A DNA stretch of 64,000 bases. Source: Macrostomum lignano (lineage: Eukaryota). The translations under genes and the position numbers were made by a program. Under the pieces are notes generated by a model, which worked only from the letters and a program-made list of their open reading frames with translations, was not told where the DNA came from and searched no databases. Position 1 is the first letter of the stretch. Each line of letters opens with the position of its first letter. The stretch is from contig NIVC01001484.1 of NCBI GenBank assembly GCA_002269645.1, forward strand, positions 62,001-126,000. Reading direction: 5' to 3'. Shown one piece after another: positions 37,491 to 44,572 of the stretch.

Positions 37491-37971
37491 TCACTCCTCA
37501 GGGTTGATGGTGCTCACCAGCACCAGGTAGTACAGCCAGTAGAAGCAGTTGTACAGCAGGAAGCAGGCGGGAAACACGAACCGGCTGTAGGTGTCGATGT
37601 CCGAGTCTGGCGATGGCACCGGAGACGGCGGCGCTCCTTTGTTGTTGCCGTGAGGACCGCCGGCCCCGCCGCCGCCGCCGTCCTCAACGCTGGCAGCCAG
37701 GAGGTCCTCGAGCTCCTCCGGGAAGCCGGGATAGCCGTGCAGGTTGCCGCCGCCGCCGCCGTGGCAGGGCAGGCCGGGCGGGAGGCCGCCGCCGCGGATG
37801 ACGGCCAGCCGCTGCAGCTCTGAGCGGACAACGCCGCGAATCTCGCGCTGCCAGCTCTCCATCTTGGTGCGCCTGGCGCGGAACGAGGCAACAGCAAATT
37901 CGATCAGAGCGCCGATGACGAACATGATGCTAGCGATGATCCAGATGTCTATGGCCTTGATGTACGCCACC
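37491..37971 (-). CDS. Cys-loop ligand-gated anion channel: single terminal exon (TM3, intracellular loop, TM4)
   Basis: Acceptor ccgcAG at 37972-37973 in phase 2. (R)[10 protein letters not shown]...[11 protein letters not shown]...[22 protein letters not shown], stop TGA 37491-37493. Confidence 0.92.
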
Positions 37972-38014
37972 CTGCGGAGTTGCGGTTGGCGGTGCGTGAG
38001 GCTCTGCTTTCTCA

Positions 38015-38320
38015 CTTCATCCATTCGTCCATTCATCCCTTCATCCATTCATCCATTCATCCCTTCATCCCTTCATCCATTCATCCATTCATCCCTTCAT
38101 CCATTCATCCCTTCATTCCCTCATCCCCTCATCCCTTCATCCCTTCATCCATTCATTCATCCCTTCATCCTTTCATTCACTTATCTCTTTATCCCTTCAT
38201 ACATTAATCCCTTCATCCCTTCACCCTTTATCCCTTCATCCATCCATTCATTCATACATTAATCCCTTCATCCATTTATCCATTTATCCATTCATCCTTT
38301 CTTTCCTCCATTCATCCTTG
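38015..38320. repeat. (CATC/CATT/CCCTT)n low-complexity repeat
   Basis: Intronic, immediately upstream (gene sense) of the channel terminal exon. Confidence 0.9.
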
Positions 38321-38644
38321 TTTATTGCCAAGGCCCAAACAGTGAGCCACTTAAAGAGTCTGAGGCCAAATTCTTAAACTGCACCTACCGCATTATCGTG
38401 TTTCATACAGACTAATTAGGAAGTAAGTAGCATGAGTTGCAAATCATCGTTGATTTTTTAAAATGCATCTTCCAAAAACGGACCGCCGAAGCGGAGGAAT
38501 GCTAAACTATCCAAGTCTATCAAGAAACATTTTGTTTTCTAAACGGGTTTCGCAAAGATTTGTTTCCTTTTCGCACAGCGCTGAATGAGGCTTGGCCATA
38601 GACAAATTCTGTTTAGAATTGCTCGTCTAATGCCTGCAGCAAAA

Positions 38645-39351
38645 GCAGACAGACAGACAGACAGACAGACAGACAGACAGACACTAAGACAGACATACAG
38701 ACAGACAGACAGACAGACAGACGACAGACAGACAGACACTAAGACAGACATACAGACAGACAGACAGACAGACAGACACACAGACAGACACACAGACAGA
38801 CACACAGACAGACAGACACTAAGACAGACATACAGACAGACAGACAGACAGACAGACAGACAGACAGACAGACACTAAGACAGACATACAGACAGACATA
38901 CAGACAGACAGACAGACAGACAGACGGACAGACAGACACTAAGACAGACAGACAGACAGACAGACAGACAGACAGACAGACAGACAGACACACAGACAGG
39001 CAGACAGACAGACAGACAGACACTAAGACAGACATACAGACAGACAGACAGACAGACAGACAGACAGACAGACGGACAGACAGACACTAAGACAGACAGA
39101 CAGACAGACAGACAGACAGACAGACAGACAGACAGACAGACAGACAGACAGACAGACAGACAGACAGACAGACAGACAGACAGACAGACAGACAGACAGA
39201 CAGACAGACAGACAGACAGACAGACACACAGACAGACAGACAGACAGACAGACAGACAGACAGACAGACAGACAGACAGACAGACAGACAGACAGACAGA
39301 CAGACAGACAGACAGACAGACAGACAGACAGACAGACAGACAGACAGACAG
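38645..39351. repeat. (CAGA)n microsatellite
   Basis: Tetranucleotide array with CACTAAGA interruptions. Confidence 0.97.
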
Positions 39352-40057
39352 TTGGCATGATATGCGCAGTTTAAGTAGTCCCTGGATATGCGAGGGCAAT
39401 TTCCATCTGCTTCAGCTGGCCTCTCAATGCTCAGAATTGAATAGCAATTAACGTCAATGCCGAATGAAATGAAAATCCTAAACTTTCTGTAAATTTCTTC
39501 CTGCCCCACCTGAAAAGTGCAGTAATAACCGCACGTAACAAACTCGTGCATTATTTCACATTTGCTGCTCATTGACGATGGCTCAGCAGGGATGGAGGGA
39601 TAAAGAGACTGGGAGAATGCCCTACGTTGAGCGTGAATGCTTTATTTCCGAGGCATAATTTAATTAGGCCATAAACAGCGCTGAGGATCGCTGATCCCGG
39701 GAGCTGGGCAGTCTGTTCAGCGGAGATAAGCGGGACTATAATGGAGGGAAGAGATTGACCTGCAGCCCAGGGGCCGACTTGCACTTCCCTGACGCGTTGC
39801 AGTTCGGGATAGATGATGCTGCGCTTGCAACTCCATCCCGGGGGTGGAAATAGATGAACTTACAGGGAGCTGGAATATGGCACCTATGGATGCTGGGGGG
39901 TTTCTATTCACTTGTAACTGCTGGATTTCTGCAGCTGGCAATGTTAGCGATTAACACACTGAGAAACTGAGTTCTCTGAGGGATCAGGGGCGAACAGAGG
40001 TTTCTGTGGCCCGGAGAGTCTGACAAGAGCTTGAGAGCGATTAAATGTTAAAGGGCT

Positions 40058-42094: not shown

Positions 42095-42360
42095 GCCTGC
42101 CTGCCTGTCTGTCTGTCTGTCTGTCTGTCTGTCTGTCTGTCTGTCTGTCTGTCTGTCTGTCTGTCTGTCTGTCTGTCTGTCTGTCTGTCTGTCTGTCTGT
42201 CTGTCTGTCTGTCTGTCTGTCTGTCTGTCTGTCTGTCTGTCTGTCTGTCTGTCTGTCTGTCTGTCTGTCTGTCTGTCTGTCTGTCTGTCTGTCTGTCTGT
42301 CTGTCTGTCTGTCTGTCTGTCTGTCTGTCTGTCTGTCTGTCTGTCTGTCTGTCCGTCTGT
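42095..42360. repeat. (CTGT)n microsatellite
   Basis: Nearly pure tetranucleotide array. Confidence 0.98.
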
Positions 42361-43234
42361 TTTGCTGCACACTCAGACCGCGAGAATATCGTCAATAATA
42401 GATACTCGTAGATTAATAGAATGCTATCATTTCATATAGCAGAAAAACAGTGCATTGCTACTCAGATGTTGCTAACATATTTTGGTCCTGCTAAGCTGCC
42501 ATTGATTTCAGCTTGCGCCACAGCCTGTCTAATTTGCAGACTCATTCTCTCATGCCCGACAGTCTCCGGGCCCAGGCAATACTGCCAGAAATGCGACCCG
42601 CAGTGCAGGAGCGAGAGGCCGTCCCCAGAGTGGGTCATCAAAGGCTCAGCGCTATGCATAGCCTCGCTATATTTATATCACACTTATTGGTATGAGGACT
42701 CATGCTCAAAACTGCATGGAGGACAGCACATCGGTGACTCCCCGGGTAACTAACTCACTCCAGAGCTCCATTTCCCAGCGAGATTGGACTGCGACTTTTT
42801 CAATTTGCCAGGCGTTAGCGGCGGAGGCGGAGAGTTGAGGAAAGTGGTGGAGACCGCAAGATGGCGCAAGTCTCACCGGCACTGTTGGCTACTCAACTCT
42901 CTAGCTTCTCAAGGCCACTATGCTCTCCACTCTTCTCCCAGACCCTCCTACAACCGCTGAGAAGTGTGGAGGTGAAGTTTTGCTTTTCCTCCTGCCCTCT
43001 CAGCAAGGGGTCCCCACCGTCCCCTGCTCACCTGGTGTGCTGTGAGCTCTCTCGCTCTCTCTCTAGTGGCTCAGCGCGCGACATTGAGAGTGAAAATATT
43101 ACAATAATTCTTTTAATATTTTGGAAGAACTTCTAATGATAAGTCATAACAGCTTAGGCAGTGCAGAGAATGCTGACATTGACTGCGTTTTGCCAATAGC
43201 CAATAAATCTAAACTCTCTCAAAGACACCAAACG

Positions 43235-43530
43235 AAGATGGAGATTCCCCAAGGACGCCCAACCAGGATGGAGATTCACCAAGGACGCCCAAGATTCTCA
43301 CAAGGACACCCAACCAGGATGGAGATTCCCCAGTGACACCAATCAGGATGGAGATTCACAAGTCACACCCAACAAGGATGGGGATTCCCACAAGAACACT
43401 CAACCAAAGTGAAGATTCCCCAAGGACGCCCAACCAGGATGGAGATTCCCCAAGGACGCCCAACCAGGATGGAGATTCCCTAGTGACACCAACCAGGATT
43501 GAGATTTCCATCCAAATCAAGATGGAGAAT
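43235..43530. repeat. Degenerate ~30-bp minisatellite (CCAACCAGGATGGAGATTCCCCAAGGACGC)
   Basis: Tandem imperfect copies just inside the intron after channel exon A. Confidence 0.85.
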
Positions 43531-43565
43531 CCTTGCTATTAAACTGCTCAGACTCCGCCACTCAC

Positions 43566-44572
43566 CTGGGCAGGTTGTTGATGACGGACATGCCCTGAGT
43601 GAGGATGCCCAGCAGGGTGAGCAGCCCCAGAGACACCCTGGCGGGCACGGCCTCAACGTTGATCCAGAAGTTGAGCCAGCTCACAGCGATGATCAAGATG
43701 GCGGGGATGTAGGTAGCAGACAGGTAGCTTCCCAGCTGCCGCTCCAGCTTGAAGACGGCCTTCAGGCACGCGTAGCTGCCCGTGCTGGTGGTGCTGCTTT
43801 TCGAGCAGTCGATCACCTTGACACTTTTGGGCGTGTTGAACTCGGAGATCTGCATGCTGGAGTCCAACTCGACGGGGCTCTTCTTGCCCTTCAGCCAGCG
43901 GAACTCCAGGTTCTTGGTGGTGTACCCGTAGCTGCCGATGTTGATGTAGCACGTCTGCGTGTCCATAGGAAACGTCTGCAGCTGCATCTGGCAGGAGAAC
44001 TTCATGGTCACCTTCTGCGAGTACAGAATGCTGCCGTCTGGGTCCACCCTGATCAGGTAGTTCGGCTGCGTCATCTTGTGCAGGTAGCCCTCCTTGCCGT
44101 TGCGAAAGAACAGGTCGGGCAGCCAGAGGTTCTCCTTCTTGGCGGGAATGGCGATGGACTCGTTGTAGAAGCGGAACTGGTTGTGGTGCCACATGAGGCG
44201 GTGGTCCTTCCAGTACTGGCGCAGGTACATGTCCAGCGTGAACTCCATGTTGATGACGTCCACCTTGTTGATGCTGAGGATCTTCATGTTGACGAACACC
44301 ACGGTGGAGTCCTCCTCAATGCGGCCGTCCGGCCGGGAGCGGCGGGCCGGCACCGGACGCTGGTGCTTGTTGTAGCCCTGGAAGATGCTCTCCACAATGC
44401 GGTCAACGATGTTCGTGTAGTTCGGGGCCGCTGCGCCCTGCCGGATGCCGCCGCCGTCCCCGGTGGCCACGGCGGCCAGCACGCTGACTGACGACGGTGT
44501 CGCCGCACTGAGCAGCAGACCGACTGTCAGCAGGACGCCTGCCAGCAGGCCGCCACCCGCCCGGAGCTGCAT
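43566..44572 (-). CDS. Cys-loop anion channel (GluCl/GlyR-like) exon A: signal peptide, ECD, TM1, TM2
   Basis: ATG at 44572 (MQLRAGGGLLAGVLLTVGLLLSA signal), Cys-loop, loop C, AVPARVSLG, phase-2 donor AG|GTGAGT at 43565. Splicing to 37971 gives an intact 495-aa subunit. Confidence 0.9.

Follow-up and report, generated by a model that had tools for sequence, protein, structure and literature searches.

A predicted GluCl-like channel gene of the flatworm Macrostomum lignano with two tandem first coding exons and a single exon for TM3 and TM4

Background

Tandem 5' exons that each carry a start codon and a signal peptide of their own, and that share one set of 3' coding sequence, occur in UGT1A and in the protocadherin clusters; in the latter, partial gene conversion acts among the variable exons and spares their type-specific parts. 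Here we describe a comparable layout in a gene of Macrostomum lignano, which is predicted to encode a Cys-loop chloride channel. The gene lies on the reverse strand of a stretch of 64,000 nucleotides (nt), called the window below (assembly GCA_002269645.1, contig NIVC01001484.1, positions 62,001 to 126,000), and consists of two large exons, A and B, which form alternative heads, and of one exon C, which forms the tail. Like the variable exons of UGT1A and of the protocadherins, A and B have the same donor phase and no in-frame upstream acceptor, and the 3' coding sequence is single. Unlike these systems, the window gene has only two variable exons, belongs to another protein family, and includes part of a pore in its variable exon. 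A model which had seen only the letters of this DNA and a list of its open reading frames (the sequence-only reading) had already likened the gene to protocadherins and UGT1; at the level of gene architecture the comparison is apt, as the variable-first-exon design is shared.

Within the Cys-loop family, alternative modules are arranged differently. The avr-14/GluCl-alpha3 gene of C. elegans has a common N-terminal part and alternative C-terminal channel parts. The same is said of unc-49 of C. elegans, which Bamber and colleagues reportedly described in 1999. Both are loci of Cys-loop anion channels in which a shared module is joined to alternative large modules; the window gene is their mirror image, with the ligand-binding domain (LBD) and the transmembrane helices TM1 and TM2 as the alternative part and TM3, the intracellular loop and TM4 as the common one. 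In insects, RDL, GluCl and the nAChR subunit D-alpha6 contain short internal, mutually exclusive exons chosen by splicing. There, too, duplicated exons diversify the LBD within one Cys-loop gene; in contrast to the window gene, however, none of these cassettes is a complete first exon with start codon, full LBD and pore helix. Alternative first coding exons do occur in GABRB3 (exons 1 and 1a), where they encode only signal peptides and a few residues (PMC4082499); neither binding domain nor pore is part of them. The closest proteins that have been characterised are the glutamate-gated chloride channels SmGluCl-2 and SmGluCl-3 of Schistosoma mansoni (Dufour et al. 2013, PMC3757052). With these flatworm GluCls the window gene has in common the two Cys loops, the PAR motif at TM2 and the LP(R/K) linker; it differs from them by an intron in the TM2-TM3 linker and by the duplicated 5' part. 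To our knowledge, a design with two heads and one tail is undescribed for pentameric channels. A full-text search for literature combining "alternative first exon" with "Cys-loop" found none, and a survey of Macrostomum ion channels (PMC3447372) contains nothing on the channel gene of the window.

Results

The exons were located by tblastn of three open reading frames (ORFs) against the 64 kb and by direct reading of the letters; both reproduced the coordinates which the sequence-only reading had given for A, B and C (Table 1). In agreement with that reading, signal peptide, LBD, TM1 and TM2 were found in each of the exons A and B, and the last residues of either exon are LP(R), followed by a GT donor in phase 2. 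Its claim that only one TM3-loop-TM4 exon exists, with none between A and B, holds as well: apart from exon C, tblastn over the 64 kb detected no TM3/TM4-like sequence at a cut-off as loose as E=50. The ORF of exon A is unbroken from the ATG through the Cys-loop (C-x13-C), the second Cys pair, TM1 and PAR-TM2 to its phase-2 end. Unspliced, it runs immediately into a stop codon (AGG TGA). The acceptor phase of exon C completes the Arg codon split by the head donors, and splicing of A to C gives a clean protein of 495 amino acids (aa). Exon B is 82% identical to exon A over 289 aa (tblastn, E 4e-153); apart from a frame break near its 5' end, which is discussed below, it comprises 289 codons without a stop, and if left unspliced its frame stays open for 22 further codons.

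Several tandem arrays adjoin these exons. A 30-mer array (43237-43506) begins about 55 nt past the donor of A, a 25-mer minisatellite with 12.8 copies (40056-40374) begins about 65 nt past the donor of B, and an array of GGATGAAx 8/24-mers (38015-38301) stops about 40 nt short of the acceptor of C. A 20-mer array with 69 copies (35856-37250) lies about 240 nt downstream of the channel's stop codon, and (TGTC)n arrays are present in both introns of the channel gene.

A second locus of M. lignano (contig NIVC01001215.1, called L001 in Table 1) shows the same order as the window: an A-type exon (e1), a B-type exon (e2) and a single C exon. This finding supports the architecture of variable first exons and a constant last exon proposed by the sequence-only reading. 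All four heads (A, B, e1, e2) end with ...LP AG/GT in phase 2, where the slash marks the exon boundary, and between e1 and e2 no TM3/TM4-like sequence was detected, even at E=50. The spacer between the heads measures 2.1 kb in the window versus 11 kb at the second locus. The two C exons are 79% identical at the amino acid level, with a ratio of non-synonymous to synonymous substitution rates (dN/dS) of 0.29. The non-coding DNA and the neighbouring genes of the two loci have no detectable similarity; because these parts cannot be aligned and the synonymous divergence (dS) is about 0.65, the loci appear to be well separated, and they represent either different species or old paralogues. The recurrence of the layout at such an independent, well-separated locus argues that the two heads are real rather than an assembly artefact and that the arrangement has persisted for long. 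A further sequence of M. lignano, the UniRef entry P0020, is a third A-type head (ARVSLG...GMSVINNLPR, 73-78% identical), in which unrelated sequence follows right after LPR. There may thus be at least one more locus with the same intron, perhaps with the same two-head layout.

In a four-way codon alignment of A, B, e1 and e2, grouping by type is seen at the ends of the exons: Ser at the 2' position of TM2 (ARVSLG) and the linker GMSVINNLPR, with one difference in 27 nt, are common to A and e1, whereas B and e2 have 2' Thr (ARVTLG) and ASTVMxxLPR. Among the informative sites of the TM2-TM3 linker, eight group by type and none by locus. The central 395 nt, which reach from beta1 through the Cys-loop to "TTKNL" (Table 1), group by locus, with informative sites distributed 51:0:0. 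There, dS is 0.027 between A and B and 0.06 between e1 and e2, as compared to about 0.65-0.7 between the loci. As the duplication of the head is older than the split of the loci, the near identity of the cores requires gene conversion at both; the pattern indicates an old tandem duplication with ongoing conversion of the core, proceeding independently at the two loci.

For both A-e1 and B-e2, dN/dS is 0.20 at a dS of about 0.65-0.7; beyond the conversion tract, the B-e2 ratio is 0.25 in the 3' third and 0.08 for TM1-TM2. Both exon types have, on these ratios, been under purifying selection since the loci split, and B has been a constrained coding exon over most of its history. Layout, constraint and type-specific residues are kept at both loci, which suggests that the two-head arrangement is maintained by selection. 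TM2 and linker of the B-type (ARVTLG...ASTVMxxLPR) resemble those of other flatworm GluCls; for this reason, the A-type looks like the derived copy.

The differences between A and B that the sequence-only reading had listed, namely in loop F, in loop C, in TM2 (ARVSLG/ARVTLG) and in the TM2-TM3 linker, were all confirmed for the window; in addition, A and B differ in the stretch that joins helix alpha1 to strand beta1. A comparison of the two loci reveals which of these differences are fixed by type. Type-fixed at both are D88P, which is located just before beta1, S314T, which is the 2' position of TM2 according to the alignment with PARVGLG of GlyR alpha1, and G327A, M328S, S329T and I331M in the TM2-TM3 linker. 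The length of the stretch from helix alpha1 to beta1 is likewise type-specific at both loci. The proposal that loops C and F make the two subunits pharmacologically distinct finds no such conservation: the loop F sequences of e1 and e2 are identical, and their loop C differs at 4-5 of 16 positions. The 2' residue faces the pore at its cytoplasmic end and is a contact of picrotoxin-type blockers; binding is coupled to gating through the TM2-TM3 linker, and assembly is influenced by the N-terminal segment. Since the conserved differences are those in the 2' residue, the TM2-TM3 linker and the N-terminal segment, the heads would more likely differ in gating, conductance or assembly than in the choice of agonist.

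The A+C product has the two domains expected of the family (Pfam Neur_chan_LBD, PF02931, E 4e-48; Neur_chan_memb, PF02932, E 4e-27). It aligns with GlyR alpha1 from beta1 to TM4, through PAR-TM2-LPxV, and matches structures of GlyR, GluCl and GABA-A receptors with E-values from 1e-71 to 1e-62. All four heads contain the disulphide signature C-x13-C (CQMQLQTFPMDTQTC). Four transmembrane helices are found only in the spliced product, with TM1 and TM2 contributed by A or B and TM3 and TM4 by C. Both heads carry the marks of the anion type, VPARV(S/T)LG and the second Cys pair DC...GSYAC; by these two features the channel is assigned to the anion-selective GlyR/GABA-A/GluCl branch, its selectivity being a prediction. 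The closest database match is the M. lignano protein P0001 with 84% identity. The best 100 matches are all platyhelminth, and arthropod and vertebrate receptors reach at most 36% pairwise identity. SmGluCl-2 of S. mansoni is 51-55% identical over about 89% of A+C (isoform 2: 51%). A HMMER search of 1.84 billion representatives gave as close matches only the M. lignano fragments P0020, P0126 and P0105. Judged by these similarities, the window gene is a member of the flatworm (SmGluCl-like) GluCl clade; glutamate is its putative ligand, and gating by L-glutamate, permeability to Cl- and insensitivity to ivermectin are predicted from homology with the S. mansoni channels (PMC3757052). The intron and the duplicated head are lineage-specific additions to a known channel type.

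Multi-module models of other taxa were considered as analogues. P0124, P0127 and P0129 were rejected, as their repeated LBD segments are 100% identical and most likely result from duplications in assembly or annotation. P0125 and P0132 contain one LBD followed by three Neur_chan_memb stretches and resemble merged alternative tails in the style of unc-49.

The remainder of the window is eukaryotic nuclear flatworm DNA with many (TGTC)n and minisatellite arrays; its other features are included in Table 1. The two long paralogous ORFs share ...NVLNLSYYK(L/I)PHKVVVETCSYSPDEN..., and the tRNA gene between them is the only Rfam match. AATAAA occurs 61 times in the whole window, where shuffles predict 23.6.

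Table 1. Features of the channel gene, of its counterpart at the second locus and of the remaining window. Positions refer to the window unless L001 is given; a slash marks an exon boundary.
Feature	Position	Strand	Remarks
Variable exon A (A-type)	43566..44572	-	ATG, signal peptide, full LBD, TM1, PAR-TM2 (2' Ser), linker GMSVINNLP(R); orthologous to e1
Gene-conversion tract, copy in A	43906..44300	-	395 nt, beta1 through Cys-loop to "TTKNL"; 2 synonymous differences from B
Donor of exon A	43560..43565	-	CTG CCC AG/GTGAGT, consensus-like
A-B spacer	41422..43559	-	Intron of A-C transcripts; would hold promoter or 5' end of B; (TGTC)n, 30-nt repeats, unalignable flanks
Variable exon B (B-type)	40440..41421	-	ATG and signal peptide; LBD, TM1, PAR-TM2 (2' Thr), linker ASTVMGSLP(R); orthologous to e2
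Interval of the 1-nt frame break in B	41324..41358	-	Between signal peptide (MLSHWFVMQLLRCSLICLASG...) and the LBD frame with its conserved N-x-S sequon and VDRIVE
Gene-conversion tract, copy in B	40786..41180	-	395 nt
Donor of exon B	40434..40439	-	CTG CCA AG/GTTTAG, weak
Acceptor of exon C	37972..37995	-	caccgccaaccgcaactccgcag/G; exon starts ...ctccgcag/G GTG GCG TAC
Constant exon C	37491..37971	-	First base completes Arg codon, then TM3, Gly/Pro-rich intracellular loop, TM4, stop
e1 (A-type)	L001 10001-10944		Donor GT, same phase as A
e2 (B-type)	L001 22006-23000		ATG and signal peptide in frame with LBD; donor GT, same phase
C exon of the second locus	L001 24825-25301		Only one in the 26.5-kb locus
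TPR protein	4482-5003	-	
Protein kinase	13211-14433	-	
Actin	16933-17933	-	At least 1 intron
Long ORF, 853 aa	19569-22127	+	No Pfam match; paralogue of 25151-27646
tRNA gene	23229-23298	-	Between the two paralogous ORFs
Long ORF, 832 aa	25151-27646	+	No Pfam match; paralogue of 19569-22127
Retroelement ORF, 670 aa	29495-31504	+	Reverse transcriptase domain, RNase H domain; downstream of the channel gene by about 6 kb
Ariadne/IBR (RBR-type) E3 ligase	52258-55419	-	
RagA/Gtr1	61194-62150	-	Single ORF
Glu/Arg-rich repeat ORF	62723-64000	-	Runs off the window end

Discussion

Alternative first exons in front of a shared constant exon are, in our view, the best reading of these data and a fairly probable one. 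An ancient tandem duplication of the large first coding exon would have created two alternative heads in one GluCl-like gene, each with its own start codon, signal peptide, LBD, TM1 and pore-lining TM2, and the constant exon would provide TM3, the intracellular loop and TM4 to either of them. A transcript begun upstream of A would be spliced from the strong phase-2 donor of A across B to C (A+C), whereas a transcript with its 5' end upstream of B, at a promoter of its own or at a trans-splice site for a spliced leader (SL), would join B to C. Exon arrangement points to these two routes: the A-type exon is constrained as a channel but lacks TM3 and TM4, so that it could yield a subunit only through a splice that skips B and reaches C; B has its own ATG and no in-frame upstream acceptor and would therefore have to begin its own mRNA. 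The resulting subunits would share the TM3-TM4 loop and TM4 and would differ at the N-terminal segment before beta1, at the 2' residue (Ser/Thr) and in the TM2-TM3 linker (GMSVINN versus ASTVMxx). Recurrent gene conversion keeps the core of the LBD nearly identical within each locus; the type-specific ends escape. At the window locus A+C is intact, and B+C is recently disabled unless the break in B is an assembly indel. The exon anatomy, its recurrence at a second locus, the purifying selection on A-type and B-type exons and the conversion tract are observed; the use of A as well as B in mRNA, the choice of the 5' end, glutamate as ligand and a functional difference between the products belong to the inferred part of this reading.

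Several findings weigh against it. No mRNA, expressed sequence tag or predicted protein joining A, B, e1 or e2 to C was found, and the annotation of M. lignano joins neither head to C. Protein searches with a 163-aa query across the B-C junction and with exon C on its own returned no Macrostomum matches; known relatives were also missed, which makes these searches uninformative. In the window, signal peptide and LBD of B do not share a reading frame, and the B donor GTTTAG is far from consensus, whereas the donor of A is GTGAGT and both exons of the second locus have GTAGG. In the annotated model P0001, the partner of e1 is a cryptic acceptor at position 16311 of L001, which lies in a transposon between e1 and e2. 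P0126, the annotated product of e2 (261 aa; L001 22006-22804), is truncated by a gap of 13 nt. Each locus has, in the available data, one head that looks compromised, and from the window locus a B+C product might not be made. Of the claim in the sequence-only reading that the window gives two subunits, the half concerning A+C therefore stands with an intact product; the other half is called into question by the frameshift and the poor donor of B, neither of which had been listed among its observations.

The two annotated models of the second locus deserve a closer look. P0001 uses the donor of e1 exactly after LPR, which shows that splicing recognises this donor. Such use, the start of P0126 at the ATG of e2 and the lack of AATAAA in the A-B spacer hint indirectly at transcripts of the favoured kind but fall short of proving a junction of either head with C. 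The model itself is a chimera, in which e1 is spliced to 16311 inside the transposon and the sequence beyond is read out of the gag frame. The transposon of about 4 kb has gag-like, reverse-transcriptase and tyrosine-recombinase-like ORFs (16061-19961) and is flanked by a direct repeat of 1.63 kb (14505-16131 = 20370-21998, 99.75% identical), which takes in a 33-nt satellite and 70 nt immediately 5' of the ATG of e2. P0126 starts at the ATG of e2, leaves the genome sequence after ...EFNTPD and continues with the loop C region in another frame; its genomic span exceeds its coding sequence by 13 nt. This gap may reflect a difference between alleles or homeologues, or a mapping artefact.

The frame break in B is the most direct difficulty. 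The ATG and the signal peptide of B (MLSHWFVMQLLRCSLICLASG...) sit in a different frame than the LBD, in whose frame no ATG occurs. The exact site of the indel could not be localised by aligning the 5' ends of A, B, e1 and e2, as the signal peptides are too diverged. A mini-intron does not repair the frame: the sole fitting GT...AG pair would remove 25 nt and leave the frame wrong. An alternative GT...AG pair restores the frame at the expense of the signal peptide, and an AUG donated by an SL would not help either, since no signal peptide exists in the LBD frame. The break is either a real, recent frameshift or an assembly indel; given the long constraint on B as a coding exon, nothing older is to be expected. 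For the published assemblies of Macrostomum, canu was run on PacBio reads and the result was polished (PMC10468722).

The frame break and the weak GTTTAG donor are also the starting point of the alternative which survives best, although we consider it unlikely: the layout could be the relic of a partial duplication that is merely tolerated, with one productive head per locus, so that the window would make A+C only and B would be a young pseudo-exon. The single-base break could, however, be an indel error if the assembly stems from noisy long reads, and the e2 exon of the second locus is undamaged throughout, its ATG and signal peptide lying in the LBD frame. A relic would be compatible with the clean ORF in the middle of B, where 395 nt are almost a duplicate of the A sequence and conversion keeps them clean, such that intactness there is uninformative with respect to selection. 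Outside of the tract this argument does not apply: B is as constrained as A, as judged by the dN/dS values of 0.25 and 0.08 given above and by the 289 codons without a stop, and the B-type residues of TM2 and of the TM2-TM3 linker are kept at both loci. The trapping of the annotated e1 transcript by the transposon acceptor and the failure to find head-C junction transcripts remain on the side of the relic.

A variant of the favoured reading places a single promoter upstream of A, with cis-splicing of A to C and, in an operon-like manner, SL trans-splicing in front of B followed by splicing of B to C. We regard it as improbable. Depending on the threshold set for coverage, 10-20% of Macrostomum genes are trans-spliced, and more than one SL site is found in up to about 1.4% of genes (PMC10468722). 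An AG is located 10-20 nt upstream of the ATG in A, e1 and e2, and the coding strand of the A-B spacer lacks AATAAA, which is weak evidence. In the window, however, no clear polypyrimidine/AG acceptor is seen upstream of the ATG of B, and any acceptor at this place would also be open to the donor of A, giving a non-productive A-B mRNA. Finally, that A and B are two full tandem genes and that A's own TM3-TM4 exon was collapsed or lost during assembly is highly improbable: repeat-rich spacers with (TGTC)n and minisatellites beside the exons could promote a collapse, but the same single-C layout exists at two independent loci with unalignable non-coding DNA, and their spacers differ in length and are both devoid of TM3/TM4 remnants.

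Returning to alternative first exons, a more complete picture can be drawn, which we put forward tentatively and believe somewhat less readily than the arrangement itself. The gene would form a system of variable heads and a constant tail, with both isoforms expressed, perhaps in different cells or stages. The isoforms would differ in gating or conductance and in assembly and would share their intracellular anchoring, while conversion homogenises the core and selection guards the ends.

Conclusion

The locus is a clean example of mosaic concerted evolution within one gene. If both heads are used, it would provide a natural domain swap, in which the same TM3, loop and TM4 are combined with two modules for ligand binding and pore. 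The differences that survived at the 2' position and in the TM2-TM3 linker concern sites with a key part in the block and the gating of GlyR, GABA-A, RDL and GluCl channels. Alternative first exons would then be a new route to the diversity of Cys-loop receptors, which complements the shared-N-terminus design of unc-49 and avr-14. The layout also explains why gene predictors truncate these Macrostomum channels after "LPR", and the repertoires of flatworm GluCls, which are candidate targets of anthelmintics, may be under-counted.

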